From NCBI RefSeq assembly GCF_963853765.1, contig NC_088860.1, positions 38,750,001 to 38,814,000 of the forward strand: a stretch of DNA of 64,000 bases. Direction: 5' to 3'. Origin of the DNA: Magallana gigas (Eukaryota). Every line of letters begins with the position of its first letter. Positions within the stretch are counted from its first letter, which is position 1. Below, piece after piece: positions 7,290 to 50,369 of the stretch. A program made the position numbers and the translations under genes. Below the pieces are notes generated by a model, which saw only the letters and a list, made by a program, of their open reading frames with translations, had not been told where the DNA came from and did not search any database.

Positions 7290-9368
7290 TCATGTCGCCA
7301 ATTTAAGAATGTCGAACCCTCTGATAACCTCGGGGCTCACTTTCAAATGTTTGTTCCCACTTAATAAAAGTTGTCTTGTTCTTGATAGATAGGAAGTGCG
7401 TGTGACGTTTGTAATGTTATTGTTTTGAAACCAAAGATCCAGAATTCCATCTGGTAGCTGTTCCGGAAAGTCTGTAAGTCCGCGATTCCGACAGTCTACG
7501 ATCGTTATTCCACTGACAGACCTTTCATAGCAGGAACAGGTAGCTGGGCATTTTGGAATGTCTATTTTACAATAAGTATCCGACTCGGGCACCTGGAAAA
7601 CTGGCTTGTATCGGAATTCAGCCGGAGATGAACATTTCCAGTCATTGAAGAAATACTCGTTTCCCCTCAGAAGGCCATCAGCAAGCATTCTTTTAACAAA
7701 TCTAGTGAAATGGTTGATTCGACAGTCACAATGAATGGGATTGTCGGTCAAAATGAATTGGAAATATTTTAGCAAAATCAGTAGCTTAAGCTTTTTCATC
7801 CGAGCATTTAACCGTGTTGAAAGACTAGTTCCGAAATATTTTAGATGGAGGTTGTTAATTTTGCTTCCTGTTAAATCGATCCTTTTCAGCCTCCTTGGAG
7901 ACGATTTGAGCAGGTCGGTCTCTGTTGTGGTCGAGCTTTGTGCGTTACCTTCAGCAAGCAAAGAGAAATTCAAATCCAGAAGCATCTGTGTGAAATTTTG
8001 AAAATCAATGCTGGTATATCTTAAACTCACTTCTTGCAGCGTTTTGAAATACAGAACAGCATCCGGAAATTTGCTCAGTGGGTTACCGTCCAAAATCAAG
8101 GACTTGAAAGAAACCGAGAAAGCTGGAAACATAGAATAACTGAGAGTTACTATATTGTTATACTCCAGTCTAAGTTCTTGAAGGTGGTGAAGTCTTGAGA
8201 AGGCGTGGGGTCCAATCATTGCTATGCTGTTGTTAGAGAGGTCAAGGTAAACGAGTTCCGTATTATAATAAAACATGTCATCAGAAACCACAGACAAGAG
8301 ATTTGCGTGTAAATTCATGTGTCGGAGGGCGGTTAAACCACGGAACCCATCAGTGGGAATGTTTGAAAGGTAATTCACACTCAGGTCAAGATGCTGGAGA
8401 CCTGGCAAACCAGAAAACGTGAATGAACTGAAGGAGGACAGACCATTCCCAGATAATTTCAACATGTCCAAGTATCCCTCAAATCTGAATCCTACAAGCG
8501 TTTCTATATCGTTTGAATTTAAATTAAGAACCCGTTTTCGCATGTTTGGCTGTATGATGACATTGTATCTTGTAGCAGAATCGTACAAACCAGTTTCAGA
8601 TAGCGACTTGTTGTTTTCAAAGTACATTCGTTTATTATTCCATGGGAAATTAGGCGAAGTCTTCAAAAAGGAATCGGATATTTGTAGATCTTGTAGGTTT
8701 GGAAACTTATACTTAAGATGAGAAAGATGTTGATTTAAGTCAAAACGTCTAAATTGCAACTCTTTAACATTTGGAAATGTTTCATTACATTGAAACATTT
8801 CAGAAAAATTGACTGCATTATGTTTTTCAGGCAAAATAATCCCTATGGCGTTGGCGGACTTGAGATATCTGCAGTTAGAATTTAGCAATTTTGAACCATC
8901 ACAATAAGAATACTTTTGAAGTGGATATGTATTGATGAAAGACACGTGGTTAAAACTGGCGCGGTTACTAAGTGTGTTCAAGCTATCTGTTGTCAGAAGA
9001 CAGTTTTCTACTTGAACATGAAAAACCGCGTTTGGTATAGTTGGTCTGGCGTCTGGATTAAAATGAATAGTGTAGTTTGCAGCACATCGCATGATCAAGA
9101 CAGCAACTGCCCTGTTTCCGTTAAAATGGTAACTATCTAACACATCAGCTGTGTTCAGATAGCACTCATCTGATGATGGAGGCATCAAAGAAATTCCTAC
9201 AATGTTTGTCTTCAGTGGCTGATTGTTCACTTCCATAACACTGAATGATGTAGACTTAACTTGTCTGTAAAGACACTTCGGTATTCCGCATTGAGTAACA
9301 ATGTTTGCTGTCGAAAGTTTCATAGCAATAAAGCAGAAGCACCAAATAACGTTGAAATTTCGAAGCAT
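7290..9368 (-). CDS. TLR-A: ectodomain-only (secreted-type) Toll-like LRR protein, 692 aa, no TM or TIR
   Basis: ATG at 9368. Hydrophobic signal peptide (MLRNFNVIWCFCFIAMKLSTA), Cys-rich N-terminal region, about 10 LRRs (e.g. LQHLDLSVNYL, LVYLDLSNNSI), LRRCT (NPIHCDC...DWKCSSPAEF...TYC), LRRNT (CPATCSC...IVDCRNRG), then about 2 LRRs and a stop. Collinear with the ectodomains of B, C and D. Confidence 0.88.
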   Translation of the reverse strand: MLRNFNVIWCFCFIAMKLSTANIVTQCGIPKCLYRQVKSTSFSVMEVNNQPLKTNIVGISLMPPSSDECYLNTADVLDSYHFNGNRAVAVLIMRCAANYTIHFNPDARPTIPNAVFHVQVENCLLTTDSLNTLSNRASFNHVSFINTYPLQKYSYCDGSKLLNSNCRYLKSANAIGIILPEKHNAVNFSEMFQCNETFPNVKELQFRRFDLNQHLSHLKYKFPNLQDLQISDSFLKTSPNFPWNNKRMYFENNKSLSETGLYDSATRYNVIIQPNMRKRVLNLNSNDIETLVGFRFEGYLDMLKLSGNGLSSFSSFTFSGLPGLQHLDLSVNYLSNIPTDGFRGLTALRHMNLHANLLSVVSDDMFYYNTELVYLDLSNNSIAMIGPHAFSRLHHLQELRLEYNNIVTLSYSMFPAFSVSFKSLILDGNPLSKFPDAVLYFKTLQEVSLRYTSIDFQNFTQMLLDLNFSLLAEGNAQSSTTTETDLLKSSPRRLKRIDLTGSKINNLHLKYFGTSLSTRLNARMKKLKLLILLKYFQFILTDNPIHCDCRINHFTRFVKRMLADGLLRGNEYFFNDWKCSSPAEFRYKPVFQVPESDTYCKIDIPKCPATCSCYERSVSGITIVDCRNRGLTDFPEQLPDGILDLWFQNNNITNVTRTSYLSRTRQLLLSGNKHLKVSPEVIRGFDILKLAT

Positions 9369-9545
9369 TTTGGATAATGTTTTATCAACCAGTGCTTATT
9401 CTAATTTTTGTTCCCTGTTGATAAACAAGAGATGCTCTAGTCAGTCACAAATATTCCACGTTTGTATGATTTACATTCAATTTAAACAAGCATGTGTTGC
9501 TAAGTCTTTCGCCTTGTGTCGGCTGTCCAAACTTTGTAACAAATT

Positions 9546-12500
9546 CTGATTAAGAATGTTTTATCCGTTGGCACGCGTCCATTTTGGCCTATCAGAGATC
9601 GCAGATCTAGTCGAGTGGTAAAATCTTTCCGTAGCTTCCTGTAAGAATAATTATGTACATATTTAGTAAATACAGGCCGTTGAAACTCACTTGAAATCTG
9701 TCTGTCTTATTGGTCTGATTGGCGACTCTAATTGAATTCATGAATGATATATCATACGATAGAACCGCTAATATCAGCTTTTTGTGTGTCGATAACATAG
9801 GACTGGGTCATCAATCAGCGAACAGTGTATGCAATGATATATAGTCAGCGGGGATAAGAAATATCTCTTTCAAGTTTGATAACTCCAAAAAAAAATTGAC
9901 AATGAGAGTTGTATTTTTATGGGTAATAAAGACTAAAATTTTGTTTATATTCTCATTGTTGTATGAATTTTGTGTAAATCCATTACAAAGATAAAAAAAA
10001 CTGAAATAAACAATTCTTTGTATCCTTAAATCAAATTAAATTTATGACAAACTTTCAGTTTCACAAAAAAATTATGTAAAATTTGTCAAACATGTTAAAT
10101 TGCAACTTAAATCTAGTTTTCCGACAAAAGTTGTGCAAAAACTACAATAAAAAATATAAGATATTGATCAGTGGACATTTTAAAAACAAAATATTTTGAA
10201 GAAGTACAGAGTAAAGTTTACTCGCTCAAAGAATAATCGTAGTTTGTTTATTTGAACATCTGTAGAAACATCAGTGTTCTTGGGGGACCAATATTCATGG
10301 CTTTCTTGCACACGAATTTACATCCAAATTATTGCTCATATTATTGTGAGCTTTGAAGTACAGAAAAAACCATGCCGTTGAAAGGGCTTATAACATGTAT
10401 CATACGCTAACACATCATCGATATCATTTTGTTTAACATATGCAATGCAATGACATCTTTACCATATTATTTCCCTTCTGTTTAGAAAGCATTATCAATA
10501 CCTACATGATTATGAAGCAAAAACACCCCTTTGAAAAATCATTCTTATCATTTTGTTTAACATATTGAAAACATATCAACTTAACCATTTTATTTCTATT
10601 TTATTCGGAAAGCTAAACTAATGCATACATAATTCTGAACCTTGAATTGCGGTAAAAATATATAACTGAAACGACCTACTACTACTCGATAAATGAAACA
10701 TTCCAATTTTTTTGTCGACACACGCAAAGCAATAACTACCAGATCATCTTATATCTCTTCTTTTCAGAAAGAAAGCATAACCAAAGCCTAGGTAATCATG
10801 AACATTGAAATACAGTAAAAAAACATACCGTTAAAATGACCTAGTCCTATCAAATGACGCAACAATGTTTCTATCCCGTTTTTTAAAGTCGCATAAGGTA
10901 AAATAAATTGCAACGTGTGACAGTTGGAGTTAATAATAAAATATGTCATCCCTAATGCACTTTGTTATAAAATAATACAAGGATATTTATTTGTATGCAA
11001 GGTTTCTTTTTCTATTTTTATAAAAGAGGAATTTCGTGCCCTATGCTCTTTACCTGTTGAAACCCAAGACCTACATGAATGTGTGTTTAAATGGTGCACT
11101 CTTTCTGAAAAAGGGTACACGCATTCAAAAAACGACTTCTTAATTCTAATTAAACATAACAAGATAAAAAAAAAAAAGCTTAAAAGGTGCATGATTAAAA
11201 TTTAAATTAGAAAAATTAAACAAATCAAATTATGACAGGTTAACATACTGTTATGGCGCCTTTTGATAGAAAAACGAGACTTCATGGGTCTAAAAAGGGA
11301 TATGATCATATAAGATCTTATACAAATGGCGACTTATTTTTCCCTGAAAAAGTCGGTTTTACCTGATTAAAATATTTTAGTTGGTCTTAGATATGGAGAA
11401 GATATGCATTATTAAAAGCATTCAAAAGCAAGTAGGTGTTGTACTATTGAACACAGAAAACAAGATCTAATTAACAATTGGTTCTTTAAATTGTTTGAAA
11501 ACTATTGTTATAGGCGCTTTATGATAGCCTATTAAATAAACATGAGGCTCTGTCCGCGAATAATTTTGATCAGCTTTAAGAAAGTTGACAATTCAATGCA
11601 TTTTTGCAGAATTTTGAAAAAGTACTTTTGTTTAATATAATTATAATTATGCTCCATTTTTTCAGTGCTTTTGCATAAATTTATATATACATGTACATGT
11701 TTGAATGTTAAAAAGGAAATGGTTTACACTTTAGGGGATCAAATACATATTAATTCTTTAACAATTAATGATTTTTTGTGTAATAGTTAAAAAAAAAACT
11801 TCATAGCATAAATATTAATCTGAAATATGATTGGCTATGAAAACGAGATATTAAGGAGGCTGAATAGTTACCAAAATAACCATCAGATCTACATTAAGGT
11901 CAATATCTAGTAAATGAAAGGTGCCTTCAGGTTTATAAGTTTTAAGATGTAAACTCTTCCAATGATGCTCCAAAACAATAGCTTTGTCTGATAGGGTGTA
12001 CCGGGGCTAAAAGTTTTTGTAAACACAACGAAAAATCTTGTTTTAAACTGTCATTTTCAATGCAATATGAAAGAAATAAGGAACAAATCGCGGAGTGTTG
12101 TCCATTTTTGACTAATAAAATATATCTAAAATGCCTAGTCTCTCCAAATGATGTCAAATTAAATATAGGTATCAGGATTACTTTTCCCATAATTTAATAT
12201 AGAATGTCAAGGAAGTGTTTACTTTTCTAACTAATTTCTTTAACGCCTTAAAGTACGGGAAAACGATTCTTCAAATTAATTATGACGTCATAATGTTTCT
12301 AGCACCAAAAATACTTTCAGGAATCATTAACTAGATCTTGGCGTTAAATATTAAGAAATGATGATTTAAGCCATACACCTTTGTAAAGAAAAATTCTATA
12401 GATATTAGCTTTGAAATTTGAGTAACTCTTTTTTTATATCTTTATATAGTGCTCTTCTTAAAGAGATCAATTAGGACTTAAAATGACCGCCACCATCGGA

Positions 12501-12860
12501 CCCCTAAAGGTGTATTCAAATTTGCAATGTTTTAAATGTTGAGATTCTAGATGTATCTGGTTTTATTTGCCTGAATGACAAGTGTATACCATATGAAATT
12601 GTCTTAATAAACTCAATAATGCATAAACAAACCTCACCTGATTAAATGTTGCATAATGAAGAAATGCACAATATATGCAAATTGAGTTGCGTAGAAACTG
12701 CACCATATTTTGAATAATTCAATTAAAGTGCTCACCTGAGAAATCATGTAAATTTCTAACATGAAAGAAAAACTATGATAAGATATGCCCTTGATATATT
12801 TTTTTCCGACAGCTCTTATAATGCGCTGCATATATAAAACAATATTATTTTTGAACTTAC
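9546..12860 (-). other. Putative leader intron of TLR-A
   Basis: Acceptor CATTCTTAATCAG| at 9546 (177 nt upstream of the ATG; alternative at 9639), donor TAG|GTAAGT at 12861/12860, TATATAAATATA at about 12914-12925. Other CAG|GTGAG donors occur near 12637 and 12735. Confidence 0.38.
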
Positions 12861-15742
12861 CTAGCTCCGATGCAAGATTGTATCACTTGTAAGTTTTCTT
12901 GGGAAATATTGTCTATATTTATATAGGAACCGTATATCTGGTGCTAGAAAGATTATTGGATAATTAAATGCATTTAAAGTGTTCAATTCCGGCTGGGGAA
13001 AATAAGTACCTGATTCGTTGGCCTCGCCCCCAACAAATCCCTGCTTTTGGTTTTTGACTTTGTAATATGTACCTTTGTTTACTTACTTAGTAAGAATGAC
13101 GTCACAGCAATAATACCACCTAATAAAATGCTTTTCTTTGCCCATAATAGATTTGCATAGAATTGTTGAGCAATTAATGTGATATATATTCTATCAATTA
13201 AGGCTAATGTGTAAATGAGACCTATTACAAGGTATATGTATGAATAAGTCAAAGGGACTTTAACAGTGTTCCTTAGATCAAACACGCATGTTAAACAAAA
13301 AGCAAGTCATAAATCTTCCATTCTACGTCACTGTCCTCTGTACATCTACCGTTTCAGATGTTATTGTTCTCCCATTATTTGTCGATTTGGATCGGCAGAT
13401 ATAATTGTCAAACCAGAAATTGTAATGACCATTTTGATTTTACTAAGTTTCTTTCTAGCTCCGTTTTTTCACGAATACATTTGCAAAAAAAAAATGTTTT
13501 ATGACAAAGATATGAAAACAGAATGCTCTTCATGCAAAAATGTTTTCTGTATTTTATGATTTGCACGTTCTTTCCATTAACTTAATTGTTTTGTATAGAA
13601 GCACACTAGTTACACTTTAAAAACTAATTTCCTAGAAAGATTTGGTAGCAGGACATTATGCAAAGCGTGGGCTTGTGAAATGTGCACTGTGCTAATATCC
13701 CTCTTAAGAAAGATCTAGACAAGCAAGGAAAATGTCGTCTTAATCCGAACCCCTTACTTAGATTTTTATGATTAAGATTTTAACTTCAAAGTGTAAATTC
13801 GTGATATGTTGAATTTCCTATTCACATTTTTTAAAAGGATATAATGCGAAAGTAAAATTGCATTTTAGAAAGAAGCCAGTTACCAGCAGCATGCAAAGAC
13901 CATGAAAAAATAATTTGGTACAGCCGCCTTGGAAATCAAAATCAAGTCAGTTTGTTGAAATTTTGAAAAATTATTCGAAACCTTATAGTTATTTTTTCTT
14001 TTAATTTGAAGTAAATAACACAATCCTGTTAAAAGTTAAATGATATTTATTCTTAATGAAAAAGAACTCTACAAATGGTAAATTTTATACAGATGTGCAT
14101 CCAGCAATTTTTCTTTTCAATAATGCATGAACGATAACCTTTTAGAATAAATTTAATTTTTGACTTTTGTTGATAACATATTCGGATAAATGTAAATTTT
14201 TATGCATGTGTCCTCTTTTAATGCGTCTTATTCGAAACTATTTTTTTCAGGATTTTTTGAAAATTCATCAATCATTTTCTTAAGTCGGAAGCAACACGGA
14301 TTTATGTCAACGGAACAACTCGAAACCTTGTCAAAAATTCGACATACTTCTGACCCCAACGTGAGCCCTACAGTCATCTTATTTGAATTGATGATTTTTC
14401 CATTCATGTTTTTTGTGGTTTGAGTGACTTTTCCTCACTTCCATCCAATCACATATCTAAGTGAAATCCTAGTCCTTCAAAATTGATCGCTAACACGTGT
14501 TCTATCTCAAACGGTATGTATTCACTTGGGTTACGACATCTCTATGTAAGGGCGTACATGCATTGGACAGTTGTAAAATGTATGACTGTATATCATTGAA
14601 TATTCTAAAAGGATGGAGAATCATGTTTCATATGACATTTGCTTCGACAAAATGTATGACATTTTAAAAAATGTACTTTTATTTTATGCTCATTTTTGCT
14701 ATCGATGATACAAGTATGTAACAATTTAAAAAGATGTGCAATAATGAGAGTTCTTGTTGGTTTGTTAATTATGATGAACAAGAAAATGATGTTGAAGGTG
14801 ATAAAAATCTAGAAAATTTGCCATTTTATTTTAATAATTGAAGAATTTTCTTGATATGATAATGTAAGAAGTGGCTCCAAGTAAATTAGCAAGAACGTGA
14901 ATTTCGGAATTTTTGTTTAAATTTTGCAGGTTATTCATCTTTTATATATGTACTCTCATAAAATCCCTTTCTTACTCGATAATGGGCATATACAACATTT
15001 TTTATAGTACGGGTACAGTGTCAACATTTAATTCTCATAGACCTTAAGTTCTGCCGGACCTTTGAAAGCCTTTATAACATGATTGCGCTTAGAGAGATAA
15101 TTTGATGTTTTCTCCTTTAGCTTGCCAATGTATTCTGTCGAAATCTATCTATATGTATAAACAGAAAAAAAAATCCATTAATGGCTCAAATATAACTTCC
15201 AAAAAATACAAGTCGAGTGGTCATTCTCCTTCATAAACTTATCTTGTTTACTAAATTGTTGTGAACTCGCATAACCTTCATAATGTTACTCTGTTCCATT
15301 CGTGTCACGTGCCATTGATTTCAATTAGCGTGCTCGAAGTGCCTTTATATGCCATTTACTTTATTTATAAATACATCATATGTAAGTTGTATATTCAACG
15401 TATTTTTGTCTGATGGTAAGTTTCCTTAAGCTGTTGAGGAATTGCAATAAACGAAGTCACGTGTTTTGTTAATGTGTCTTTTCCGATCTGCTTAATTTCT
15501 TCTTATACATATCGTCTAATGTATCAAGATTCACCCATTCTACTCATATTTATTCGTTAAGGACAGGGTTACGAAATGGTTGAGGAATCCTTTCTATTTT
15601 TCCATTTTTTATGATTACAATTTTTGATATATAGGTATTTGTAATGGTGAGCCTGAATTTTAACTTTTAAAAGAGACACAGTTTACTTTCCATTGCTACG
15701 CAAAAAGATTTCATGACATGTATTTATTATACAGATTGTATT

Positions 15743-15866
15743 TAAGGAATAAGGAATCCTTTTTTTAGTATTATGAGGTGATAATTTCGGTCTAGACGTG
15801 GTCCAATCCAATAAACCCGAAGGTCTTTCTGATAGATTTGACCACACCCCGACCAAATTTATTACA
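15743..15866. repeat. Second, diverged and truncated copy of the GAA-loop palindrome family
   Basis: AAGGAATAAGGAATC...TATTATGAGGTGATAATTTCGGTC...CCAATAAACCCGAAGGTCTTT...GATAGATTTGA. Confidence 0.75.
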
Positions 15867-18399: not shown

Positions 18400-18767
18400 T
18401 GTTCATGGTACACTGTCTGTTTTCCAGTCAAGTGAACCGAACAGATTTTCTTTGTTACCCAACACAACTTCTTTCTCTGTTTGTAACTTTTCCTTGTCCT
18501 GTTTGTTTTATCTAAGTAGACAAAAAAAAAAGCTTGAAAAAAGAAAGGAAAAAAGAACTTTTACTGGTATATTGAACCAATGTAAATAAAAACATTTCAC
18601 AAGCCTTCTTTGCAAACATGTAACAAAGAATTGTAAGCTCTGATTCTTGCTTATAAATCTATGACTGACACTTAAACTGGTTTATTATTTGAAATGCATT
18701 ACTGAAGCATTATAAACTATAAAATTAGAAAAATATATTTTGACTAAAATTGCTAATGCCCCTTTAA
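18400..18767 (+). mobile_element. Diverged right-end fragment of the same TTAA/Kolobok-like family
   Basis: TTTTACTGGTATATTGAAC...GAAATGCATTACT...ATGCCCCT-TTAA, matching 4940-5150. Confidence 0.6.
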
Positions 18768-18884
18768 AACGGCTCCCCCAAAGATGGACAAACAACTTTG
18801 TTTTTCTTTCATAGACCTGTTCAATGTTCGTAATTAGTGGCGTTTACTTTTGTTGTACTTTCGACATGTAGATTATGATGTTGA

Positions 18885-18917
18885 TGTTGACGACGACGAC
18901 GATGATGATGATGATGA
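18885..18917. repeat. Compound (GAC)n(GAT)n microsatellite
   Basis: Direct reading. Confidence 0.85.
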
Positions 18918-19020
18918 TAAGATGTATTATTCATGAATGTTTTTACCAAATCAAGCAAACTGCATTTTACATTGAGTTATCTTTCTTTGACTTGAATTAG
19001 GATAACGTCTCTCTTTAAAT

Positions 19021-20470
19021 TTATTAAGGTATTCCGTTTCCAACGGAAGACCGTCTTGTTTTCGTTCTGTTTCTTTTTCTTCGCTATTTTTCTTTTTTTC
19101 CAACAAATTTTGAGCACGCGATTTCTCAAAAACGACTCAACCGATTTTCAATAAACTTTCAGATATGATAGATACTGATCTAAACTTTATAGTTAATCTT
19201 TTTTTATTTTGGATGACGTAAATTCCGTTTTTGAGATATTGACGTTTTAGCGATTTTCAGAGGGTCGGCTTGTCCTTGGATCTTCTCCTTAACGATTGAA
19301 GATATTGAGTTCAAACATTCAGGGATTGTAGTCGAACAATTGTAGATGTATCTTTAGGCATTCATTGTTGTCTGACTCAAAAGGCGCTGATGCTCGCCTG
19401 GACCGGAAATTTGAGATTTAAAAAACGTCATTTTTTTCGGGTTTTCTTTGTTTATCTCTTTTTGAAAAATATTTTGTTAAGACATGTAACGTAAAAATGT
19501 TTATTTTTAGTAGACATTCCATTTAACATCAAGAGAAAGAGATTGGCCCCTAAATTCAGGGGACCAAAGGGCTCTACAATTTTTTAACCAATAGTTCTTT
19601 ACTGAAAGATATTTTGTGAAATGTTATAGAAGCAAATATGTTTATCTTACATTTATGTATCCAAGCAATGCAATGATTTTATAATGTGTTACGTAATTAA
19701 GGGTTTTCAGAGGCCAACAGTCTAAAATTTCGATCACTCATAACTCAGAAAGAAAAAATATTTTGAAATGCAGAAAAGTTGTTTAAAATGATGTTCTTAG
19801 CAATATGAAACCTTCAAAATCTCGCTAAATGACCCCTAAAAGGAGATAAGGGACCGGCCCTTAAAAGCTTCTTTGTCATATATCTACAGAACGGTAACAA
19901 ATTTCTAAACACTAGTTGAACAAAATGTGTTTAGAATTAAATGTCCGTTTATTTATTATCAAGAAAAAGGGGCTGACCCCTAAAATTTGGGAACCAAAGT
20001 GCCATAAAGTTTTTTATCTTTAGCCCTTTACTGAGGGATATTTTGTGAAAGGTTATAAACGTAAATATGTTAATTTTAGAGTTATGTACCCAAGCAATGG
20101 AATGATTTTATCATGTGTTATGTAATCAGGGGTTTTTAGGGGCCAAAAGTCAAAAATTTGATAACCCATATCTCAGAAAGGAAAAATATTATGAAATGCA
20201 GCAAAGAATAAAAATTGTTCAGAATGATGTTCTTAACAATATGTAACCTTCAAAATTCGTAAAACGGCCCCTATAAGGAGATAAGGGATCGACCCCTAAA
20301 ACGTTCTTTCCCATATCGCTCGAGAACGGTTAACGACTTTCTAAACATTTGTTGACAAAATGTGTTCAGAAGTAAATGACCTTTCATTTGATTTCAAGAA
20401 TAAGGGCCCTTAAATCAAGGGACCAAAGGGTTCTTAAGTCATTTATCTATAGCCCTTTACTGAAAGCTGT
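19021..20470 (+). mobile_element. Helentron/HINE-like non-autonomous element with an internal tandem array of about 430-435 bp units
   Basis: Terminal stem-loop AAGGTATTCCGT-TTCCA-ACGGAAGACCGT (19026-19054), then a pyrimidine-rich microsatellite-like tract, then about 2.2 diverged units (anchors CCAAGCAATG 19661/20090 and GGAGATAAGGGA 19842/20277). Confidence 0.6.
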
Positions 20471-20526
20471 TTTGTGAACGAGGTTGTGTCTAGTTTTTTC
20501 TATAATTTATCTATTTATCTATATAT

Positions 20527-20530
<4 letters not shown>

Positions 20531-20588
<58 letters not shown>
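20531..20588. repeat. (AG)29 microsatellite
   Basis: Direct reading. Confidence 0.97.
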
Positions 20589-20593
<5 letters not shown>

Positions 20594-20947
20594 TTGATTA
20601 TTTATAAAAAAAACTCTGCAATAGGAAATAAATATGGAAATTTAATAAAGATGCAAAAATGATTCTGAGTTTAAATCAATCACAACTCAACTGCTTTGAC
20701 TTTGATTTTTTGCGAGAACGTTTCAACGTATTTTACTTATTACATCATATTAAAACTCTTTTAATGATATCTGGTACCCCTATAAATATGCTGCGAACCT
20801 GTTTTGCCAAAGCAATTCGGGTCCGTTGTACTAAAAACAATTTATTCTGCACTGCAACTGTGATTAATCCAAATTATTCATAGCCAATGTATTCTCATAT
20901 TTTAATTCATAATCTACCCATCCATATATAAATCTATTCCTCCAACG

Positions 20948-21000
<53 letters not shown>
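20948..21000. repeat. (CTAT)13 microsatellite
   Basis: Direct reading. Confidence 0.97.
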
Positions 21001-21001
<1 letters not shown>

Positions 21002-22498: not shown

Positions 22499-25400
22499 TT
22501 ACATTTCTTTATCATCATTTTCTGAGTCAGTATAGTTGTCACTGTCGCTGACTTCTTCACAGTTAGAAGGGTTATGAGGAGCTGTTATTTGGTAATGTTC
22601 ACAACTGACAGCACAACTAAGAGGTCCATAATACGGAATGTCAGTATGTCCATGATTTTCTAACCTCACCTCAAATACATTGACATTCTGAATGTCCGAC
22701 AAGCTTTCGTCCTCCTCTTTAACATTCAAGCACATACTGTCTTTGATGTTCATTTGTAGGGACTTGCCGCATAACAATGTTTCATCACTTACGTTCAAGT
22801 GAATGCTGCTTTGATTTACTTCAGTCCTAATTTTGTTTTCGTCTTCACTTTCGTCGGTATCTGAGGACGAATCTATTTCACTATTCTCTTCGTATGACAA
22901 GCTTGAATTGTCCTCACGAGTGTTTTGTATACTTTCATTTTCACTCATATTTAAACTGCAACTTCTAGTATCATCGCTTGGTACATCAAAGTTATTTTCG
23001 ACGACAATGTTGATTTGTGCATTGTCAGCCTCTTCCTTTAGTTCCTCATCCTCGTTAATTTCGTCTCTGTTGTTCTCTATAACGTCATCATCATTATTAA
23101 CGTCAGTGTCACTATCTTCTGATGATTCAAACAACATGCTATCTGTTACGCTTTGGATATCGTTTTCAAAATTAAATATTTCTACTATTTGAGCCTCATC
23201 CTCGACACATCGTACACAAGGTTTAGCATCTGATAAAGAATTCAAAAGTTTTTGCACAAACCATTCCTCACCGATTTGCAGAATTACGTGAGTACTTACA
23301 AGATTTTTAATTTCCTCGTCAAGCTCGTCGATATCTACATTTTCACTCAAAATAACAATCAAATGATTACTTTTGGACCTTAAAGATTTTTCAAAAGCAG
23401 TTCGAAAAGTGAAAACTGACCACTCGTCTAGCAGGTGGTTCTCTGACACAAAGAATAGTGTGTGAAGGCAGCTGTCAATTGCTTTGAGAATATTTTCTTC
23501 CTTTGATGCCCCTGGTATAAAATCCCGGTCGGGAAGCCATAAAGTGTAACCTATTTCATCAAGAACAGGTTTAATATCGTTAAGCATGCAGTTGATTTCT
23601 GTTTCGGAGTATGAAATAAAAACATGGCGATCGTAAACTTCTTGTCTTAATGTAATGTCACCGTACATGTTCATAACACAGTTTTGTATGTTAGGTAACT
23701 TCTTATCTTTCACATCGATATCACTGAATCCTTTATGAACAGGCATACAATAAAGAAGTTTTTGACCAAACAATCTATCGTTCCATTTTATAATATTACT
23801 ATTCTTAGCAAATCGTGCCATTTCTTTGTTGGTTGTTTTTCTAAATCGTACGTTATAAAGCACGGTTACAACATAATTATGTCGTAAGGTTTTAATTTTC
23901 TCTTGTGCTTCGTTCCATATAAGTTTTAACATCTGTCCTTCCAATAAAAATTCTGGAGACACCACCAATATAAGTCGTTTACTATTTTTTACGATGCTAG
24001 AAATATTTTCTTGAAAAGAAAACCCTGGAATGAAATCCCTCATGATTTCGCATACGACGTATTGACTTTTTTGCTTTTCAAGATATGTGACTATGTTGTC
24101 CATCACCCACTGTGTTAAACCTGGAACGTGAATAACAAGAACATCCACGGGTTCTCTGCCTTCATCATCATCCAAATCAAATGGATGGATGCCCAAATAG
24201 AGAAATGTAAGAACTTTTGCCTCAAATCTAAATACATACAACAAACAGATTCCTATCAAACTAAGCAGAACTGCAAGTGTACTTGCTGTGGTTGGGATGA
24301 TGCCATCTTTAATAGAGTCATAATCTTCAATGCAGACAAAGTCAACGTCTGGAATATTGATGAATTTTGTACCCTGTTCGCTCTCATTGTCAACATTACA
24401 AGTAACATCTGCGATATCCAAGATATATTTTGATTTCTTTATAATCCAGTGTTTCATCCAAAGTGACTTGCAATCACATTTAAATGGATTGTGTTTGATA
24501 TCGATGAAATCTATGTTCGTCTTCTGTAATTCTCGTGGTAACGTCACTAGATTATTGGAATCCAAGAAAAGATGTTTAAGATTCATTATTCGATCCAATG
24601 CTTTAGTTTTTATTTCGTGAATTTGGTTGCTCGAAAGTGAAAGATGTCGTGTACGATTTAAGTATTCAACATTTTCCAAAACAGACACGTTATTATGTTG
24701 AAACCATATATCAAGAATTCCATTTGGAAGTCGATTCGGAAGGAAGAAGTAACCACGATTCCGACAGTCAACGATGATAACCTTACTAACGTGTCGCTCA
24801 AAACAAGTGCAGTTATATGGACAATGTGGAACAATTTTTTTGCAGTAAGTATCTGATTCCTTGATATTGACAACCAGTTCATTCTTCATTTCGTCCGGCG
24901 TAGAACATTTTAATTTCTGAAAAATATATTCAGTTCCGGAAAACTCACCACGTTCTTTTGCCTGAAGGATAATCCTATTAAACTCGTTGATTCTGCAATC
25001 ACACGTGAATTTGATTCCGTCTAAAATGAATTCAAAGTACTTGACAATTAACAGAAAGATTTTTTGAACAACATTTTTTTTATTCTTCATTTGCACGATT
25101 GAACCAGACTCTTTGTAGCCTTCCAGCGGTGCCAGATAAAAATTTTCAAGTTTTGATCCAGACAGATCTATTATTCTGAGTTTCTCTGATGTTTTGAAAA
25201 ATACTTTATCTATAGTACCTGGTGAAGATGTGATTACACTCATTTGTAGAGAATACCAATTTATTCTGTACAACATTTCGTTGATATTACGTAGGTGAAT
25301 ATTTGTGTTCCGAAAACTCGCTTTTTCCAAAGTTCGAATGTAAAGTATAGATAAAGGAATGTTTTCTAGTGGATTCATATCAATGAGTATATTTTTCAAC

Positions 25401-26656
25401 TTTAAAGAGGCGGCAATAAACAAATTGTCTGGCAGGTGCTTTATTTCGTTAGATCTTAAATTTATTTCTTCTAAATTAGGTAATCCTCCAAACGCATTTT
25501 CTTCGACAGTTTTGATTTTATTATATGATAAATCCAAGTACTTTAAATTCTTGGTATCCGAAAATACCTCCTTAGAAATTTCTTTTAGGTTATTAGAACT
25601 CAAATCCAAATGTTGCAAATTCTGCAGCAGTTTGAATAAATTCCTTGAAATGGTATTCAGTGAATTATTTCTCAGGTTTAAACGTTCCAACTCCATAAGG
25701 CCAGTGAAAGTAGTTTCATTAATATGTCGAAGTCCATTACAAGACAAATCCAATATTAGCAAGTTTCCGTTAAATGCAAAATTTCTTAAATCGCGTATGT
25801 TATTATTTTTTAGCGTTAGTGAAGGTGTAAATTTCTTGTCAAATACAGTATTTTCCCGATTGGCACTTTTTAAATCTTTTGAAATGTTTTCTTTTGAATA
25901 TTCATTTTCTTCATTCCATGGAAACCTTGGTGGCATTGTTATGTTTGAATACGAAATTTCCAACCTCTGCAAATTTGGGAACTTTTTTTCAAGAACGGAT
26001 ATTGTTCGTAGATCCATTGGAATACCTTGCATTAATAGCGTTTTAACTGAAGTATATGAATGGGGACAACTGACTAGAAACGTGAGATTATGTTGTACAT
26101 AATTTGATGTTGATCCTTCCAGGGAAAATAAGTTTACAGATGACAACACGCCACACATATCTTTGTTCGAATGAATGCTATCACAGGGATTTTTTTGAAC
26201 GGATATTGTTGTATCCTTTAATGCTAAAGAGCTAATTTTGCCGAAGTTCTTCTTCAACACAAAATAGGAATCCAAAGTGAAACGACATGTTGAAATTTTT
26301 ATGGTCGAAAAAGTAACGTTGTTCGGAAGTATTTCATCAGAATAAAACTGCAGCCATACAGCCGATAAACATTCAAAGGAAATCAATCCATAGTCAGTAT
26401 TTACGTTCAAAAGACCAAACAATGACGTTGTGTTAATGGAACAATTGTAATTATTTTCAATAACTACTTTTTTCTCAATGTTGTTGGTTGGTGATTGGTC
26501 GCTTGTAGAGAACCCCGAAGTCCTTTCTCCATCTACGTTTATTTTACACTCCGGAAAAGAACATATGTTGCTGCCATTGACCAATAATCCACCATTAGAG
26601 ATAACGATCGTTGATGCCATGACGATGTAAAAAACATTAACATTTAAGATGTTCAT
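22499..26656 (-). CDS. TLR-B: multiple-cysteine-cluster Toll-like receptor with twin TIR domains and a long acidic tail, about 1385 aa
   Basis: The ORF track starts at a TTG (26728); the first in-frame ATG is 26656 (AAAATGA), followed by a signal-like segment. LRRs, LRRCT (FTCDC), LRRNT (CPYNCTC), LRRCT (NPFKCDC), TM at about 24230-24305 (IIPTTASTLAVLLSLIGICLLYVF), TIR1 (DVLVIH...RDFIPG, about 23740-24145), TIR2 (HVFISY...LPDRDFIPG...EWSVFTF, about 23232-23626), D/E/S-rich tail. Confidence 0.93.
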   Translation of the reverse strand: MNILNVNVFYIVMASTIVISNGGLLVNGSNICSFPECKINVDGERTSGFSTSDQSPTNNIEKKVVIENNYNCSINTTSLFGLLNVNTDYGLISFECLSAVWLQFYSDEILPNNVTFSTIKISTCRFTLDSYFVLKKNFGKISSLALKDTTISVQKNPCDSIHSNKDMCGVLSSVNLFSLEGSTSNYVQHNLTFLVSCPHSYTSVKTLLMQGIPMDLRTISVLEKKFPNLQRLEISYSNITMPPRFPWNEENEYSKENISKDLKSANRENTVFDKKFTPSLTLKNNNIRDLRNFAFNGNLLILDLSCNGLRHINETTFTGLMELERLNLRNNSLNTISRNLFKLLQNLQHLDLSSNNLKEISKEVFSDTKNLKYLDLSYNKIKTVEENAFGGLPNLEEINLRSNEIKHLPDNLFIAASLKLKNILIDMNPLENIPLSILYIRTLEKASFRNTNIHLRNINEMLYRINWYSLQMSVITSSPGTIDKVFFKTSEKLRIIDLSGSKLENFYLAPLEGYKESGSIVQMKNKKNVVQKIFLLIVKYFEFILDGIKFTCDCRINEFNRIILQAKERGEFSGTEYIFQKLKCSTPDEMKNELVVNIKESDTYCKKIVPHCPYNCTCFERHVSKVIIVDCRNRGYFFLPNRLPNGILDIWFQHNNVSVLENVEYLNRTRHLSLSSNQIHEIKTKALDRIMNLKHLFLDSNNLVTLPRELQKTNIDFIDIKHNPFKCDCKSLWMKHWIIKKSKYILDIADVTCNVDNESEQGTKFINIPDVDFVCIEDYDSIKDGIIPTTASTLAVLLSLIGICLLYVFRFEAKVLTFLYLGIHPFDLDDDEGREPVDVLVIHVPGLTQWVMDNIVTYLEKQKSQYVVCEIMRDFIPGFSFQENISSIVKNSKRLILVVSPEFLLEGQMLKLIWNEAQEKIKTLRHNYVVTVLYNVRFRKTTNKEMARFAKNSNIIKWNDRLFGQKLLYCMPVHKGFSDIDVKDKKLPNIQNCVMNMYGDITLRQEVYDRHVFISYSETEINCMLNDIKPVLDEIGYTLWLPDRDFIPGASKEENILKAIDSCLHTLFFVSENHLLDEWSVFTFRTAFEKSLRSKSNHLIVILSENVDIDELDEEIKNLVSTHVILQIGEEWFVQKLLNSLSDAKPCVRCVEDEAQIVEIFNFENDIQSVTDSMLFESSEDSDTDVNNDDDVIENNRDEINEDEELKEEADNAQINIVVENNFDVPSDDTRSCSLNMSENESIQNTREDNSSLSYEENSEIDSSSDTDESEDENKIRTEVNQSSIHLNVSDETLLCGKSLQMNIKDSMCLNVKEEDESLSDIQNVNVFEVRLENHGHTDIPYYGPLSCAVSCEHYQITAPHNPSNCEEVSDSDNYTDSENDDKEM

Positions 26657-27700
26657 TTTCACAACTGTACACAATATTAACTTGGCATGGAATTTATGCA
26701 AAACAAAATCCAGGATGTATATATCCAACAGAATTTTCTTCAGTATTTCATTTTAATATGCATAATTTATTTCGGCACTTTTGCAATAACTTTCTCACTC
26801 CTTCCAAAATTTCCCCGTCTCAATCTATATAAAATAAAACATTTAAACATAAATTAATTGTAAAACATTTCATTAAAACACGTCACCTTCTTCCCCATTT
26901 TTCTTTCGAAATGGAAAGGAAGAAGTTATTCCCTTCGCAATAAATCCACAGTATTTTAAGACGATGAAATTGTTATGCAGAATGGAAATTACAAATGGCA
27001 AATTTGCATAAGAGGACCTCGTAAAATCTTAATTAAGAACAGTGTTTGATCGCTTAGCTTTAGAAATGCACTCAAATGCTGAGTGTTGGATGTATTACTA
27101 ACTAAAAGTACAATAGCCAGCCAGAACTATAATGCATCGCCTGATCACTTGCTTTTTATTAATATGCAAGTTATTTTAATGGCAAATTCTTAGTTTTATT
27201 TATGGTGCGTAATTTTCTATTTATTGCTTTGTAATGCAAGTTTCAGGTAAATTTCGATGGGTCGAAAATATTTTTTTAAAAATTGATCGAAGCATTTCGT
27301 ATAAATCAACGATTAGTCAAAAATAAATGTAAAATTGCTTTTAAAATTTTTGTATTATAATTCTTTTAGGGGCGTAGTAACCATTTTTTATTTTCTATGT
27401 TTTAATCTCAGAACTGTTTTTTCCGAGTTGTATAAAATGTATAAAGACTGTAAAAGATACAGAACTCAGAAAATATTTTTCATGCAAACAAACATCCAAG
27501 CATCGTGCCATGGTGCTTTTGATTGTATTTTAAATACCAATTGGTTAAAGGTTCTTCTTGCTAATTCGATATGAATACAGATAAATAGTATTTAGTGTTT
27601 TTCATTTTCAAATATGTTTGATATCTTAAAATTCTTTTTAGCATTAGAAATGTAAATATAACTATATACAATACAAAAATATATCATGAAGTTATGCAAA

Positions 27701-29178: not shown

Positions 29179-29680
29179 TTCCGATGGTTTTCCGATGGTT
29201 TCTCGAATGGGAAACATCGAGCTCAGGGTTGCTCAAATACCATTTTTAGTAAGATGTGTATAATTATAGGAAGAAAAACGTACGTTAAAATCGTACTTGA
29301 GCAGACATACGCTCTAAACTTCTGAATGCTATATATAAAGAAAAAATGACAATTTTTTCATTTTATGTTGTTGCAAAATTGCGGGAATGGGGAGCTTAGA
29401 TGACGTCATAGATAAACAAGGAATGAGTAATATTGAATTCCGATGGTTTTTCGAATGGGAAACATCGAGCTCAGGGTTGCTCAAGTACCATTTTTAGTAT
29501 GATGTGTATAATTATAGGAAGAAAAACGTACGTTAAAATCGTACTTGAGCAGACCTACACTCTAAACTTCTGACTGCTATATATAAAGAAAAAAATGACA
29601 ATTTTTTCATTTTATGTTGTTGCAAAATTGCGGGAATGGGGAGCTTAGATGACGTCATAGATAAACAAGAAATGAGTAAT
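29179..29680 (+). repeat. Near-identical tandem duplication, period about 248 bp
   Basis: GAAACATCGAGCTCAGGGTTGCTCAA at 29211 and 29459; each unit carries TGACGTCA near its end. Confidence 0.9.
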
Positions 29681-46673: not shown

Positions 46674-49600
46674 TCATTGTTTCTTTCTTTCATTTTCATT
46701 GATATCAATAACATCAGTTTCGTCCTTTTGAAAAGCTCTATTTTGATAGTGTTGTGTTCCGTTCAAATGAATATCTGTCAACTGAACATGACCATTCATT
46801 TTCCCATTTTGGATTTGGATTCCATTTTTCTTTTCCTCATTTTCTATCATATCGGCAACTATCCTGCTTAGTCCGTCTTCCATCTTCGTTTTGTGCAAGT
46901 TTTCGAAGTCCACAAAATTATTGTCGTCGTGTTTAATGTACAACTCGTGGTTTTCGATATCAGGGAGGGCATTCAATAAACGTCTGATAAAACCCTTCTC
47001 ACTCACTTTAAGAGAAACGTGTGTCTTCACGTAAGCTCGTACCTCCTCCCCCATTGTTTCCACATTCACATCATCACCTAGAACCACAATGAGGTGATTA
47101 CATTTTTCTCGCATTGACTTTTCACTGGCGGATCTGAAAGTAAAAACTGACCACTCATTATCTAACTGTTCTCCAGAAAGAAGAAATATGGTATGTAAAC
47201 AGTTGTCAATCGCTTTTAGGACATTTTCCTCTTTTGGTGCTCCAGGAATAAAGTCCCTATCTGGTAGGCATAGTGTAAACCCATTGTCTTCTATAATTGG
47301 TCTCAGTTCGTTCATGACGTACCCCATATCGCTTTCGCAATACGACAGGAAAGCATGTCTTTCATACATCTCCGCGTCCGTGACATCGTTCCCATACATG
47401 TTCTGAATAAGATATTTTAAGTCAGGTAGACTTTTGACTCTCATGTCGTCGCCAGTTATTTGTGGCATGCAGTATAAAAGTTTTTCTTGAAAGAAACTTT
47501 GATTAGCATCAATGTAACGACCTCTTTTGATATATTGCTGCAAATCTTTGTCTGGAATTTCTTTTAAATTCACATCGTATGACACAACAATGGCGTAGTT
47601 AGTTTTAAGAGCTTTAATCTTTTCTTGGGTCTCATTCCATGCAATTTTTAAGATGTCGTCGTTTATGAATTCCTTTGAGAGCACGATTACTATTCTTTTA
47701 CTATGTTTCACCAACGTGGCAATATTTTCTTGGTATGAAAATCCTGCTACAAAATCTCGCATCATTTCGCAAACTAAATAATGAGCACTACTGAATTCCA
47801 AATATTCAACAACATTTTCCATTACCCATTTCGTCGCTGCTGGTGAATGTACCACTAGTACATCTACAATTTCTTTACAGTCCTTATCCTGATCAAAGGG
47901 GTGAAATCCAAGGTATATATAAAGTAGGACCTTGATTTCAAGCCTATAAATGTACATCAGGCAAATGGTTATAATCATCAAGACTAAAACAACAGATGCA
48001 ATCACACTTGGAACAAGAACCTTATTATAAGAATCAAAGTTTTCCAGGCATACAAACTCGTTGTCTGGTACACTTAGAAATTGTCTTCCATTTTCGTGTT
48101 CTTTATCAACGTTACACGTAACTTTTTGCGAATTAATGGTTATATTTGGTTTATTTAACATCCAATGTTTCAACCAAACCGTATTGCAATCACATTTAAA
48201 GGGATTATCTTCTATATTAAGTTTTCCTGAGAAATAGTCCTGGATTTCAGAAGGCAAAGATACCAAAAAATTAAAGTTCAAAAATAGTTCCTGAAGGTTT
48301 TTCAATTGACGGAACACACTAGACTCAATTTGTGCAAGACTATTATGAGACAAATAAAATGAACGAATGTGGTTGAGGTATATTCTATTACTTAATGTTG
48401 TTATGTTGTTTTGATGAAACCAGAGGTCCAAGCTACCAGAAGGTAACATTTTAGGTAAAGAGCGAAACCCTCTATTACGACAGTCTACGATGGTTATATT
48501 GCTGAGAGATCTTTCATAACATGAGCAGTTGAATGGGCAAAGTGGTATATTTTTCTCGCAATATGTGTCCTTTTCGGGGACTTCTAGTAAACTGTGGCTT
48601 TCAAACTCAGCTGGCCATTGGCATTTCCAATCGAAGCTTTTATCAGCTTCAAGAATATTGTCTTTTATTAAAAAGTTCAATACTTTTGAAATTTGGTTAA
48701 TTCTGCAATCACAGCGAAGAGGATTGTCTTCCAAAATAAATTTGAAAGTTTTAAACACCAGAAGAAGATTTTGGTGCAGTTGTTCAATTTCTTTTGATTT
48801 TATCTCGTTAACCTCATAGTTTGGTATTTCCAAATTGTCAATTTTGCTTCCAGTTAAATCCAAGATAACTGAGTGTTTATCGTCGATTGGCTGTCTGACA
48901 ACGAAATTTTGGTTTTCTACTGTTGTTTCGTTATTTACTCCATCTTGAATCGGATTTCTTGTAAAGTCTAAAATTGTTTGAGTAAAGTTTTTAAATTTCG
49001 CATTTGTGTTTTTCAAACTTATTTTTTCTAATAATTGAAGTGAGAACACAACCTCTGGGACCTCGGAGAACCCATTACCGTCAAGAATAAGCTTCTTAAA
49101 TTCTATAGAGCGACTTGGGAAAACGTTTGCATGTATTGCCGCAATTTTATTATATTCCAAATGAAGTTCCCGTAAGAGCCTCAAATGAGAAAAAGTGTTT
49201 TGTTCAATGTTGCTTATTTTGTTTCCGGAAAAGTCCAAGTACACCAAATTCAAATTATCAGAAAAATGATCGGATGACAGATAACTGATATGGTTGTTTT
49301 TAAAATCAAGATGTCGAAGTTCATTTAAGCCTTTAAAAGAGTCTGTTGGAACATGTACCAACTCATTAAAACTTAGATCCAAATACTGAAACCCTCTAAG
49401 ATTTCTAAAGGTATCATTACTGATAGTATGAAGTCTATTTCTGGATAAGTCGAGTTTATGTAGAAATCCTCTGAAAGTGTGGTTGGAAAGATCCGTAATT
49501 TGGTTTTTGCTTAGTGACATTGTTTTCATATGCATGTCATTAGGTACTTGAATGTGAAAAATTTCAGCGAATTCATAGTGTTCTGTATCGGTTCTGGACA

Positions 49601-50369
49601 TGTTGAAACTTAAATGCAACCAAACATCACTCCATGGAAAATCTGGAGGTTGCATCAGGTCGGAGTTTTCAATGGAGAGGACTTGTAATCTCGGAAACAT
49701 ACTGGGTAACTGAGAGAGATACTGCTTCATTGGGAACTTTACAAAGTTAATTTCTTTCATGTAAGGAAAGGTGGTGTTGCAATAAAAAAGCTCCTTGATA
49801 GATTTGACTGAGTTTGTTAAATTTTTAGGCATATACGTGATACCTTCTAGGGTATTCCACACTTTACAGCTATTTCTATGAATTGGTTCTCCGTCACAGT
49901 ATTTCATATCTAATGATGGATATTTTGTGTAGAAGTTGACCATAAATATCTTGAATCGGTTTTGAATCGGATACAGTTGCTCCTGGGATATTGTACAATC
50001 CTTAATCTGTATATATGACATCACATTTGGTAAAAATGGCCTGTGGTCGTCAGTAAAATATACTTCAACATCTTTATGACACAAGAACACTAGTACTGCA
50101 TAAACAGGTTTGGTGTCAAAGTTGAAGGCGTCGATAAATTCTTTCGTATCCACATAACACCTGGAATCAGTGTAGGGTTCCATGAGAAATAAAAATAATC
50201 CGAACATTTTGGTTTCCATAGTTTCATTGAGATAGTGCATGGTATTTGGTGCTGGCTGTTCACGTAAGTAAAATTCACATTTAGGAATTCTACAGTTGGT
50301 TACGTTTTGAAGATAAACCACCGAAAACAGACTACAAACGCACATAACTCGTAACAGTATTGGCTCCAT
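46674..50369 (-). CDS. TLR-D: multiple-cysteine-cluster Toll-like receptor with twin TIR domains, 1231 aa
   Basis: Signal peptide (MEPILLRVMCVCSLFSVVYL), LRRs, NPLRCDC / CPFNCSC / NPFKCDC clusters, TM at about 47945-48020, TIR1 (DVLVVH...RDFVAG), TIR2 (HAFLSY...LPDRDFIPG), N/E/D-rich tail. Confidence 0.95.
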   Translation of the reverse strand: MEPILLRVMCVCSLFSVVYLQNVTNCRIPKCEFYLREQPAPNTMHYLNETMETKMFGLFLFLMEPYTDSRCYVDTKEFIDAFNFDTKPVYAVLVFLCHKDVEVYFTDDHRPFLPNVMSYIQIKDCTISQEQLYPIQNRFKIFMVNFYTKYPSLDMKYCDGEPIHRNSCKVWNTLEGITYMPKNLTNSVKSIKELFYCNTTFPYMKEINFVKFPMKQYLSQLPSMFPRLQVLSIENSDLMQPPDFPWSDVWLHLSFNMSRTDTEHYEFAEIFHIQVPNDMHMKTMSLSKNQITDLSNHTFRGFLHKLDLSRNRLHTISNDTFRNLRGFQYLDLSFNELVHVPTDSFKGLNELRHLDFKNNHISYLSSDHFSDNLNLVYLDFSGNKISNIEQNTFSHLRLLRELHLEYNKIAAIHANVFPSRSIEFKKLILDGNGFSEVPEVVFSLQLLEKISLKNTNAKFKNFTQTILDFTRNPIQDGVNNETTVENQNFVVRQPIDDKHSVILDLTGSKIDNLEIPNYEVNEIKSKEIEQLHQNLLLVFKTFKFILEDNPLRCDCRINQISKVLNFLIKDNILEADKSFDWKCQWPAEFESHSLLEVPEKDTYCEKNIPLCPFNCSCYERSLSNITIVDCRNRGFRSLPKMLPSGSLDLWFHQNNITTLSNRIYLNHIRSFYLSHNSLAQIESSVFRQLKNLQELFLNFNFLVSLPSEIQDYFSGKLNIEDNPFKCDCNTVWLKHWMLNKPNITINSQKVTCNVDKEHENGRQFLSVPDNEFVCLENFDSYNKVLVPSVIASVVLVLMIITICLMYIYRLEIKVLLYIYLGFHPFDQDKDCKEIVDVLVVHSPAATKWVMENVVEYLEFSSAHYLVCEMMRDFVAGFSYQENIATLVKHSKRIVIVLSKEFINDDILKIAWNETQEKIKALKTNYAIVVSYDVNLKEIPDKDLQQYIKRGRYIDANQSFFQEKLLYCMPQITGDDMRVKSLPDLKYLIQNMYGNDVTDAEMYERHAFLSYCESDMGYVMNELRPIIEDNGFTLCLPDRDFIPGAPKEENVLKAIDNCLHTIFLLSGEQLDNEWSVFTFRSASEKSMREKCNHLIVVLGDDVNVETMGEEVRAYVKTHVSLKVSEKGFIRRLLNALPDIENHELYIKHDDNNFVDFENLHKTKMEDGLSRIVADMIENEEKKNGIQIQNGKMNGHVQLTDIHLNGTQHYQNRAFQKDETDVIDINENERKKQ

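Follow-up and report, generated by a model that had tools for sequence, protein, structure and literature searches.

At a Toll-like receptor (TLR) locus of the oyster Magallana (Crassostrea) gigas, three complete receptor genes lie beside a shorter relative that ends before any membrane or signalling part, and the question is what this shorter gene is and whether it belongs functionally to its neighbours. The stretch of DNA analysed, called the window below, comprises 64,000 nt of NC_088860.1 (forward strand, 38,750,001–38,814,000), and all positions count within it. Only four open reading frames (ORFs) of at least 250 aa were found in the window, all on the minus strand and coding in a single exon; they are co-oriented in the order D-C-B-A inside 43 kb, and no further long ORF is present anywhere in the 64 kb. 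The original prediction took these four genes for a self-contained immune module of three twin-TIR receptors and one secreted modulator. The truncated copy, gene A, was found to be a real, ancient and unusually constrained gene. It is moderately probable that A is an old truncated twin-TIR derivative, most likely an extracellular binder of a ligand of the twin-TIR class, and that the array arose by ordinary tandem duplication.

The four proteins are paralogues with pairwise identities of 32–44%. Their ectodomains share 15 invariant cysteines, among them C547/C549/C579/C600 and C607/C611/C613/C626 (A numbering), and an identical layout of leucine-rich repeats (LRRs) and cysteine clusters, and Pfam detects LRR families in all four. 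The predicted set of four co-oriented paralogues with intronless coding sequences and a common ectodomain plan was thereby borne out. The exact sequences of A, B, C and D are present in public collections; D falls in the same 90% cluster as C. gigas XP_011450129 (‘protein toll’), and A clusters with C. angulata XP_052703770 (‘protein toll-like’).

Gene A (7290–9368, minus strand) encodes 692 aa in which Pfam identified LRR_8, LRR_4 and LRRNT only. A signal-peptide-like N-terminus is followed by an N-terminal cysteine-bearing region, a first LRR block, an internal LRRCT-LRRNT cluster and two to three LRRs of the second block, after which the stop codon is reached. No TIR domain was found with Pfam, and neither a transmembrane (TM) segment nor a hydrophobic C-terminus by hydropathy and in the AlphaFold2 (AF2) model. 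Homology to B, C and D extends to within a few residues of the stop of A, which falls inside the membrane-proximal LRR block; past this position the receptors go on with more LRRs, an NPFKCDC cap, the TM segment and the TIR domains. A possesses the internal cysteine cluster and lacks the membrane-proximal one, and the final ~100 aa of the ectodomain, including the last LRRCT, are missing. The description of A as a clean signal-peptide ectodomain therefore stands as far as the absence of TM and TIR is concerned, but the ectodomain is not whole, and since the membrane-proximal part is absent A is not a simple soluble copy of a receptor. It fails the strict TLR definition of LRR, TM and TIR, under which LRR-only relatives are set aside (PMC8609888), and by that criterion it is an ‘LRR-only TLR-like’ protein.

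Two trivial explanations for the early stop were rejected. In a tblastn search with E values up to 10, no remnant of LRRCT, TM or TIR was detected downstream of A (1–7290) or between the genes; in this assembly A is therefore no full-length gene broken by a frameshift. An overlooked 3' splice leading out of the A reading frame is likewise ruled out, because RNA contigs continue straight past the stop codon. One of these contigs (RNA-seq run X1, 2630 nt, minus strand) runs unbroken over 7095–9637 and then resumes at 10828–10914; further contigs (run X5) cover 7029–9639. From these, exon 2 of A extends at least over 7095–9637 (minus strand) and contains 5' untranslated region (UTR), the whole coding sequence and at least 195 nt of 3'UTR. 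It is preceded by a 5'UTR intron of 1190 nt (9638–10827, minus strand; joint 9637/10828, donor GTATGT, acceptor TTACAG, read as CT..AC on the plus strand) and by an upstream non-coding exon of at least 87 nt (10828–10914, minus strand). The GT-AG joint in the RNA contig argues against DNA contamination. A is transcribed and spliced, and the mRNA carries the stop codon unspliced; the possibility raised with the original prediction that A might be silent is answered by this contig.

About 0.6 kb downstream of the A stop, a high-copy repeat of ~320 bp was observed (6383–6702). Its depth was very high in each of the four runs, with many loose ends, and its variants are of the sort that a dispersed element shows. 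In four genomic contigs of other individuals (L006–L009) it is missing, with 6703 joined directly to 6382, and it is an insertion polymorphism private to the window haplotype.

A transcribed and open frame could still belong to a gene without function, left over from a partial duplication or cut short by a nonsense mutation, that happens not to have decayed. The abrupt end without an LRR cap, the lack of homologous sequence downstream and the absence of reads in two large RNA runs at 1% sampling are what such a remnant would offer. The orthologues decide otherwise. A word-indexed search recovered relatives that match A in length: 696 aa in Saccostrea cucullata, 697 aa in S. echinata, 692 aa in a further oyster lineage and 699 aa, at 68% identity, in C. 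virginica. In the genomes whose DNA is on record for the orthologue, which excludes C. virginica, the gene consists of one unbroken ORF. A is an independent orthologous gene in five oyster lineages. The stop lies at the same aligned residue in Magallana, S. echinata, S. cucullata and the fourth lineage; C. virginica has seven residues more. Between Magallana and Saccostrea, synonymous sites are saturated (pS 0.82–0.84) at a proportion of nonsynonymous differences pN of 0.20–0.22, and for S. echinata versus S. cucullata dN/dS was 0.087 (Nei-Gojobori). An unconstrained frame of 692 codons would not be expected to stay open over this distance at ~33% G+C. Within the 90% cluster of A (501 members), all 14 sampled variants had 692 aa and the same C-terminus, which speaks against a second proviso of the original prediction, that A might exist as a full-length allele in most haplotypes. 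Four A-encoding contigs, taken from different runs, align colinearly with the window as ordinary genomic DNA.

The constraint on A also exceeds that on the intact receptors. Over the A-homologous part of the ectodomain, Magallana and S. echinata share 64.5% identity in A, 53.2% in D and 42.2% in B. Of 17 forty-residue windows, 16 showed A at least as conserved as D and B, an approximate comparison given that the species sets differ, and the gap was widest at residues 441–520 (0.77–0.78 versus 0.38–0.46). A is kept under strong purifying selection and evolves more slowly, as judged from these alignments, than the ectodomains of its receptor paralogues. With the low dN/dS, the retained stop position, the intact sampled alleles, the spliced mRNA and a conserved upstream element described below, A is not a pseudogene but a working gene, and decay in progress is a highly improbable account of it.

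The origin of A was addressed with a maximum-likelihood tree of 24 proteins. The twin-TIR sequences of oysters group together (support 100/99*), with the A clade (100/100*) nested among them. The A, B and D lineages are each present in both Magallana and Saccostrea, with C as a fourth, unresolved branch. The two-TIR TLRs of unionids lie outside the oyster clade and single-TIR relatives further out; the oyster A-D lineages together with the unionid two-TIR proteins split from the single-TIR relatives with support of 100/100*. The nested position of A and the presence of its lineage in both genera indicate that A derives from a twin-TIR receptor whose 3' part was lost ahead of the Crassostrea-Saccostrea split. 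An exhaustive search of 1.84 billion representatives returned one A-type cluster only. The other TIR-less matches inspected (P0146, P0180, P0220 and P0236) were rejected as A-type, since both LRRCT and TM are present in them; they resemble curtailed gene models or membrane forms. As far as the databases searched show, A-type genes appear confined to the Ostreidae.

The predicted protein gives some indication of where A acts. Its N-terminal hydrophobic leader carries a conserved small-residue motif just before NIV in all orthologues, as seen by alignment. From this leader and cleavage motif, and with neither TM nor retention signal, A is presumed to be secreted. The AF2 model, built on a 23-row alignment, is confident (pLDDT 86.5, pTM 0.83) except for the first ~24 and the last six residues, which are disordered. 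The top Foldseek matches to this model were the Drosophila Toll-Spaetzle complex (4LXR), Aedes Toll5A (7B1B, 7B1B-D) and C. elegans TOL-1 (8SUF), with TM-scores of ~0.44 and 14–18% sequence identity to Drosophila Toll and Aedes Toll5A. A TM-score near this value is usual for long solenoids.

Taken together, the array represents an old oyster subfamily of multiple-cysteine-cluster TLRs (mccTLRs), in which D, C and B are full receptors. A arose from a twin-TIR receptor by loss, before the Crassostrea-Saccostrea split, of everything past the middle of the membrane-proximal LRR block, and has since then been kept as an independent, spliced and expressed gene under strong purifying selection. Its N-terminal LRR arc, the Spaetzle-binding part in Drosophila Toll, is retained, and the juxtamembrane part, which mediates receptor-receptor contact, is missing. 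By its anatomy, and by the precedents of the teleost TLR5S and of soluble TLRs, A most likely is extracellular and binds a ligand of the twin-TIR receptor class. Its part would then be that of a decoy that withholds this ligand or of an amplifier of the TLR5S kind that passes it on. Since A retains an arc of the ligand-binding type and the cysteine pattern of the receptors and sits in the receptor clade, a shared ligand class is the most economical expectation, and the higher conservation of A suggests a conserved, possibly endogenous, partner. On the analogy with these systems, its action most likely modulates twin-TIR signalling or runs parallel to it.

Several observations weigh against this explanation. 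The leader of A is short, and a protein without a C-terminal LRR cap could suffer in folding or stability. The 5'UTR of A in exon 2 (9369–9637, minus strand) contains several upstream ATGs that open very short ORFs, for example ATGGACGCGTGCCAACGGATAAAACATTCTTAA, and these point to a possible translational damping of A. Zero reads fell on A in subsamples of ~1% of poly(A) and single-cell runs (X21, X24), a sampling that is uninformative about absence; the expression of A is modest or conditional. The 2-kb regions upstream of A, B, C and D showed no detectable mutual similarity. In S. echinata, the A orthologue is located on another scaffold (2.18 Mb, at 0.55 Mb) than the orthologues of B and D.

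The last two of these observations, on upstream sequence and on linkage, bear on an alternative in which A is a secreted LRR protein with a role independent of its neighbours, either a free pattern recognition receptor (PRR) or opsonin of the LRR-only type or a developmental or adhesion factor, and in which its position is a leftover of duplication. The upstream sequence of A fits such autonomy. A conserved non-coding block spans the boundary of the intron and exon 2 (9585–9762, minus strand), with 78% identity to the upstream regions of Saccostrea although synonymous sites are saturated. It contains two CCAAT boxes (9709–9722), a near-invariant core of 26 nt (9648–9673) and the acceptor ACAG|GAAGC, and is a candidate proximal promoter or splice-control element. 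The block is unique within the window. Shared cis-elements were sought and rejected, as neither the core nor the CCAAT pair recurs upstream of B, C or D.

Another conserved non-coding element, again collinear, was observed ~5 kb upstream of the A start codon (14376–14451, minus strand). It is ~80% identical to positions 5330–5391 of an S. echinata contig (L001) and 4191–4256 of one from S. cucullata (L002). Its core holds a reversed CCAAT box (TGATTGG), an ETS-like GAGGAA and a RUNX-like AACCACA. It is a possible distal enhancer of A, or else an alternative 5' exon.

The independent role is further in line with the evolutionary rate of A, which differs from that of the receptors in being slower, with the missing linkage in S. 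echinata and with the precedent of scallop LRR-only proteins that are independent PRRs (PMC5877582). Those scallop proteins have only 1–4 LRR domains, however (PMC5877582), and A has kept the whole arc of the ligand-binding type together with the receptor cysteine pattern and belongs to the receptor clade. An independent function is plausible on this evidence, though less probable than the reading of A as a truncated twin-TIR derivative binding a ligand of that class.

The opposite alternative is the one that the original prediction had put forward, namely that A to D are a co-regulated and co-inherited functional module, tunable receptors plus a dedicated soluble modulator, held together by selection. 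In its favour, all four genes of Magallana point the same way within a span of 43 kb, and A and D lie on one chromosome-sized contig in C. angulata. The linkage of the receptors is moreover conserved: in S. echinata the B orthologue (25.389–25.393 Mb) and the D orthologue (25.428–25.431 Mb) are on the same strand of one 29-Mb scaffold, ~35 kb apart, which indicates that the receptor cluster is old. A precedent exists in some teleosts, where TLR5S and TLR5M are found on the same chromosome (PMC9857387). In that assembly A itself does not follow the cluster. Both ends of the separate scaffold lie at least 0.55 Mb away from the S. echinata orthologue of A, and in neither Saccostrea species was a TLR found within 10 kb of the A orthologue. 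As A lies on another scaffold there and the upstream regions of A to D are without similarity, physical linkage and shared regulation are not supported as constraints. Of the self-contained module, the clustering of the receptors and the age of the B-D linkage stand and the inclusion of A is not supported; a module maintained by selection is improbable. Ordinary tandem duplication accounts for the array, in which the genes are not obligately linked, and a functional coupling of A with the receptors is possible.

An extra D-like twin-TIR gene was also observed in S. echinata (L004 1–2299, JAVQLB010000025.1). It encodes 1199 aa, is ~65% identical to D and lies ~7.7 kb upstream of the D orthologue, so the copy number of the cluster differs between the genera.

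A bolder version of the preferred explanation can be formulated. In it, A would be the first invertebrate case of a dedicated, gene-encoded soluble Toll ectodomain and an obligate extracellular partner, carrier or brake, of the twin-TIR receptors. Given its slower evolution, it would recognise an endogenous ligand that is itself conserved, for instance a cytokine of the Spaetzle type, as the fast-evolving receptors diversify, and it would be driven by its own promoter block and by the distal RUNX-like/ETS-like/CCAAT element. We regard this proposal as speculative and rather unlikely to hold in full.

The three neighbours of A agree with their predicted architecture of TM, two TIR domains and an acidic tail, on the combined evidence of Pfam, hydropathy and tail charge. 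Gene B has an ORF at 22499–26728 (minus strand) with its first ATG at 26656, and its coding sequence (22499–26656, minus strand) encodes a twin-TIR TLR of 1385 aa, identified from the ORF, Pfam, an exact database entry and hydropathy. Its TM segment is at ~24230–24286, TIR1 at 23693–24151, TIR2 at 23228–23635 and an acidic tail of 242 aa at 22502–23227. Gene C (37137–40916, minus strand), recognised by ORF, Pfam and hydropathy, encodes a twin-TIR TLR of 1259 aa, with TM at ~38460–38516, TIR1 at 37917–38363 (BB loop RDFVAG), TIR2 at 37452–37859 and an acidic tail of 104 aa. Gene D (46674–50369, minus strand) encodes 1231 aa and is a twin-TIR TLR by ORF, Pfam, hydropathy and AF2; TM is at ~47949–48005, TIR1 at 47424–47870 (BB loop RDFVAG) and TIR2 at 46959–47366, followed by a mildly acidic tail of 94 aa. 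Hydropathy gave one TM segment per protein (residues 791–809 in B, 801–819 in C and 789–807 in D), and the net charge of the tail after TIR2 is −52, −18 and −7, respectively. All three have the internal LRRCT-LRRNT cysteine cluster and the second cap, NPFKCDC, ahead of the TM segment.

Each receptor has two separate TIR/TIR_2 stretches in Pfam, and two TIR folds were predicted by AF2 (pLDDT 75.7). Both domains match solved TLR TIR structures, and they share 25% identity. TIR2 is of the canonical TLR type, with matches to TLR6/1/10 (E ~5e-15), and the membrane-proximal TIR1 is divergent, with TLR7 as its best match (E 2e-5). Between Magallana and S. echinata, TIR2 is more conserved than TIR1 (89% versus 79% in D, 71% versus 62% in B). 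The BB-loop motif RDF(I/V)PG was kept in TIR2 of 12 of the 13 sequences compared. At the corresponding residue of TIR1, proline occurs in the B clade only, with alanine in the C and D clades and isoleucine in unionids. By inference, TIR2 would be the adaptor-recruiting domain and TIR1 a scaffold or regulator.

Some observations concern the 5' ends of the receptor genes. Many database variants of C begin 22 residues later (METNC..., 1237 aa; start region 40851–40916), in which case the signal peptide would go, and many variants of B begin 12 residues later (MASTIV..., 1373 aa; start region 26621–26656). These late starts may reflect the choice of start codon by gene callers on short contigs or a real polymorphism of the first ATG. 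Upstream of D, ~303–345 nt 5' of its ATG, a stretch of 44 nt (50672–50714) is 84% identical to the same place in the S. echinata D orthologue. It is a possible conserved promoter or splice element of D, unrelated in sequence to the block of A.

The window is AT-rich (26–37% G+C) and free of N runs, and Rfam and tRNA scans across the 64 kb found nothing. Two tandem arrays were noted in intergenic DNA, one between A and B with 2.2 copies of a 429-bp unit (19545–20478) and one upstream of D (60853–61311), satellite-like, with units of 21, 64 and 106 bp.

The receptors and their clustering are already known. Bivalves have the largest TLR repertoires known, and to our knowledge ligands and regulation have been established for almost none of these receptors. 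A ‘twin-TIR’ class was described by Gerdol et al. 2017, with two Pacific oyster loci encoding such receptors according to the literature, and an SPP-2TIR class by Saco et al. 2023 (PMC10279657); the statement in the original prediction that oyster surveys had reported twin-TIR TLRs was thus correct. HcToll-2 of Hyriopsis cumingii (Ren et al. 2014) is another two-TIR TLR. B, C and D have the internal cysteine cluster of an mcc LRR ectodomain, a single TM segment and two tandem TIR domains, and they group with the unionid two-TIR TLRs. They show no essential difference from the bivalve twin-TIR TLRs and are members of this twin-TIR (SPP-2TIR mccTLR) class.

What is added to this picture is A, a concrete, anciently conserved, strongly constrained and expressed TIR-less derivative of a twin-TIR receptor. 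No papers were found on XP_011450129, K1QQ84 or XP_052703770, nor any description of a conserved secreted TIR-less oyster Toll, in a literature search that left most subscription journals outside. Surveys that require LRR, TM and TIR (e.g. PMC8609888) omit LRR-only relatives such as A by construction. Recombinant A could serve as a soluble bait for the ligand of the twin-TIR receptor class, and could show whether Toll signalling in oysters is under extracellular control of the kind that TLR5S provides in teleosts. This is of relevance to oyster disease biology, in particular Vibrio and ostreid herpesvirus 1 (OsHV-1).

Compared with known LRR proteins, the best structural matches of A, the ectodomains of Drosophila Toll and Aedes Toll5A, have the same mccTLR layout, but these are full receptors with TM and TIR. 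The scallop proteins CfLRRop-1 to -6 are, like A, LRR-only proteins of a bivalve; they have 1–4 LRR domains, and most of them bind PAMPs (pathogen-associated molecular patterns), and they modulate immune effectors (PMC5877582), whereas A is a Toll-type ectodomain of 692 aa with two cysteine clusters. In the split Toll system of Hydra, the LRR-only protein HyLRR is paired with HyTRR, a TIR-bearing membrane protein without LRRs (PMC8609888). The parallel with A is that of an LRR-only protein that functions, or might function, jointly with a membrane protein bearing a TIR. The Hydra partner is TIR-only, whereas B, C and D, the candidate partners of A, carry complete LRR ectodomains. Moreover, HyLRR-type proteins are anchored in the membrane and are not known to derive from a complete TLR, whereas A is TM-less and derives from a twin-TIR TLR.

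Mammalian soluble TLR2 and TLR4 are free ectodomains described as able to compete for ligand (PMC4273945). They are produced by shedding or alternative splicing of the receptor gene, in contrast to A, which has been a separate gene since before the Crassostrea-Saccostrea split. In function, the nearest analogue of A would be the teleost TLR5S, an LRR-only paralogue encoded by a separate gene that amplifies TLR5M signalling (PMC9857387). A and TLR5S are each a gene of their own rather than a splice or shedding product, each is an LRR-only paralogue of a membrane TLR and each is kept across many species; A has its own 5' exon, intron and stop and derives from a membrane TLR paralogue, and TLR5S is sometimes found on the chromosome of its partner. 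The two differ in phylum and in TLR class (single-cysteine-cluster TLR5 versus twin-TIR mccTLR). A also stops in the second LRR block without a C-terminal cap. For TLR5S a flagellin-dependent amplification has been demonstrated, whereas A is described here from sequence and RNA, and it is to this extracellular regulation of a membrane TLR by its own LRR-only paralogue that A would be most closely comparable.

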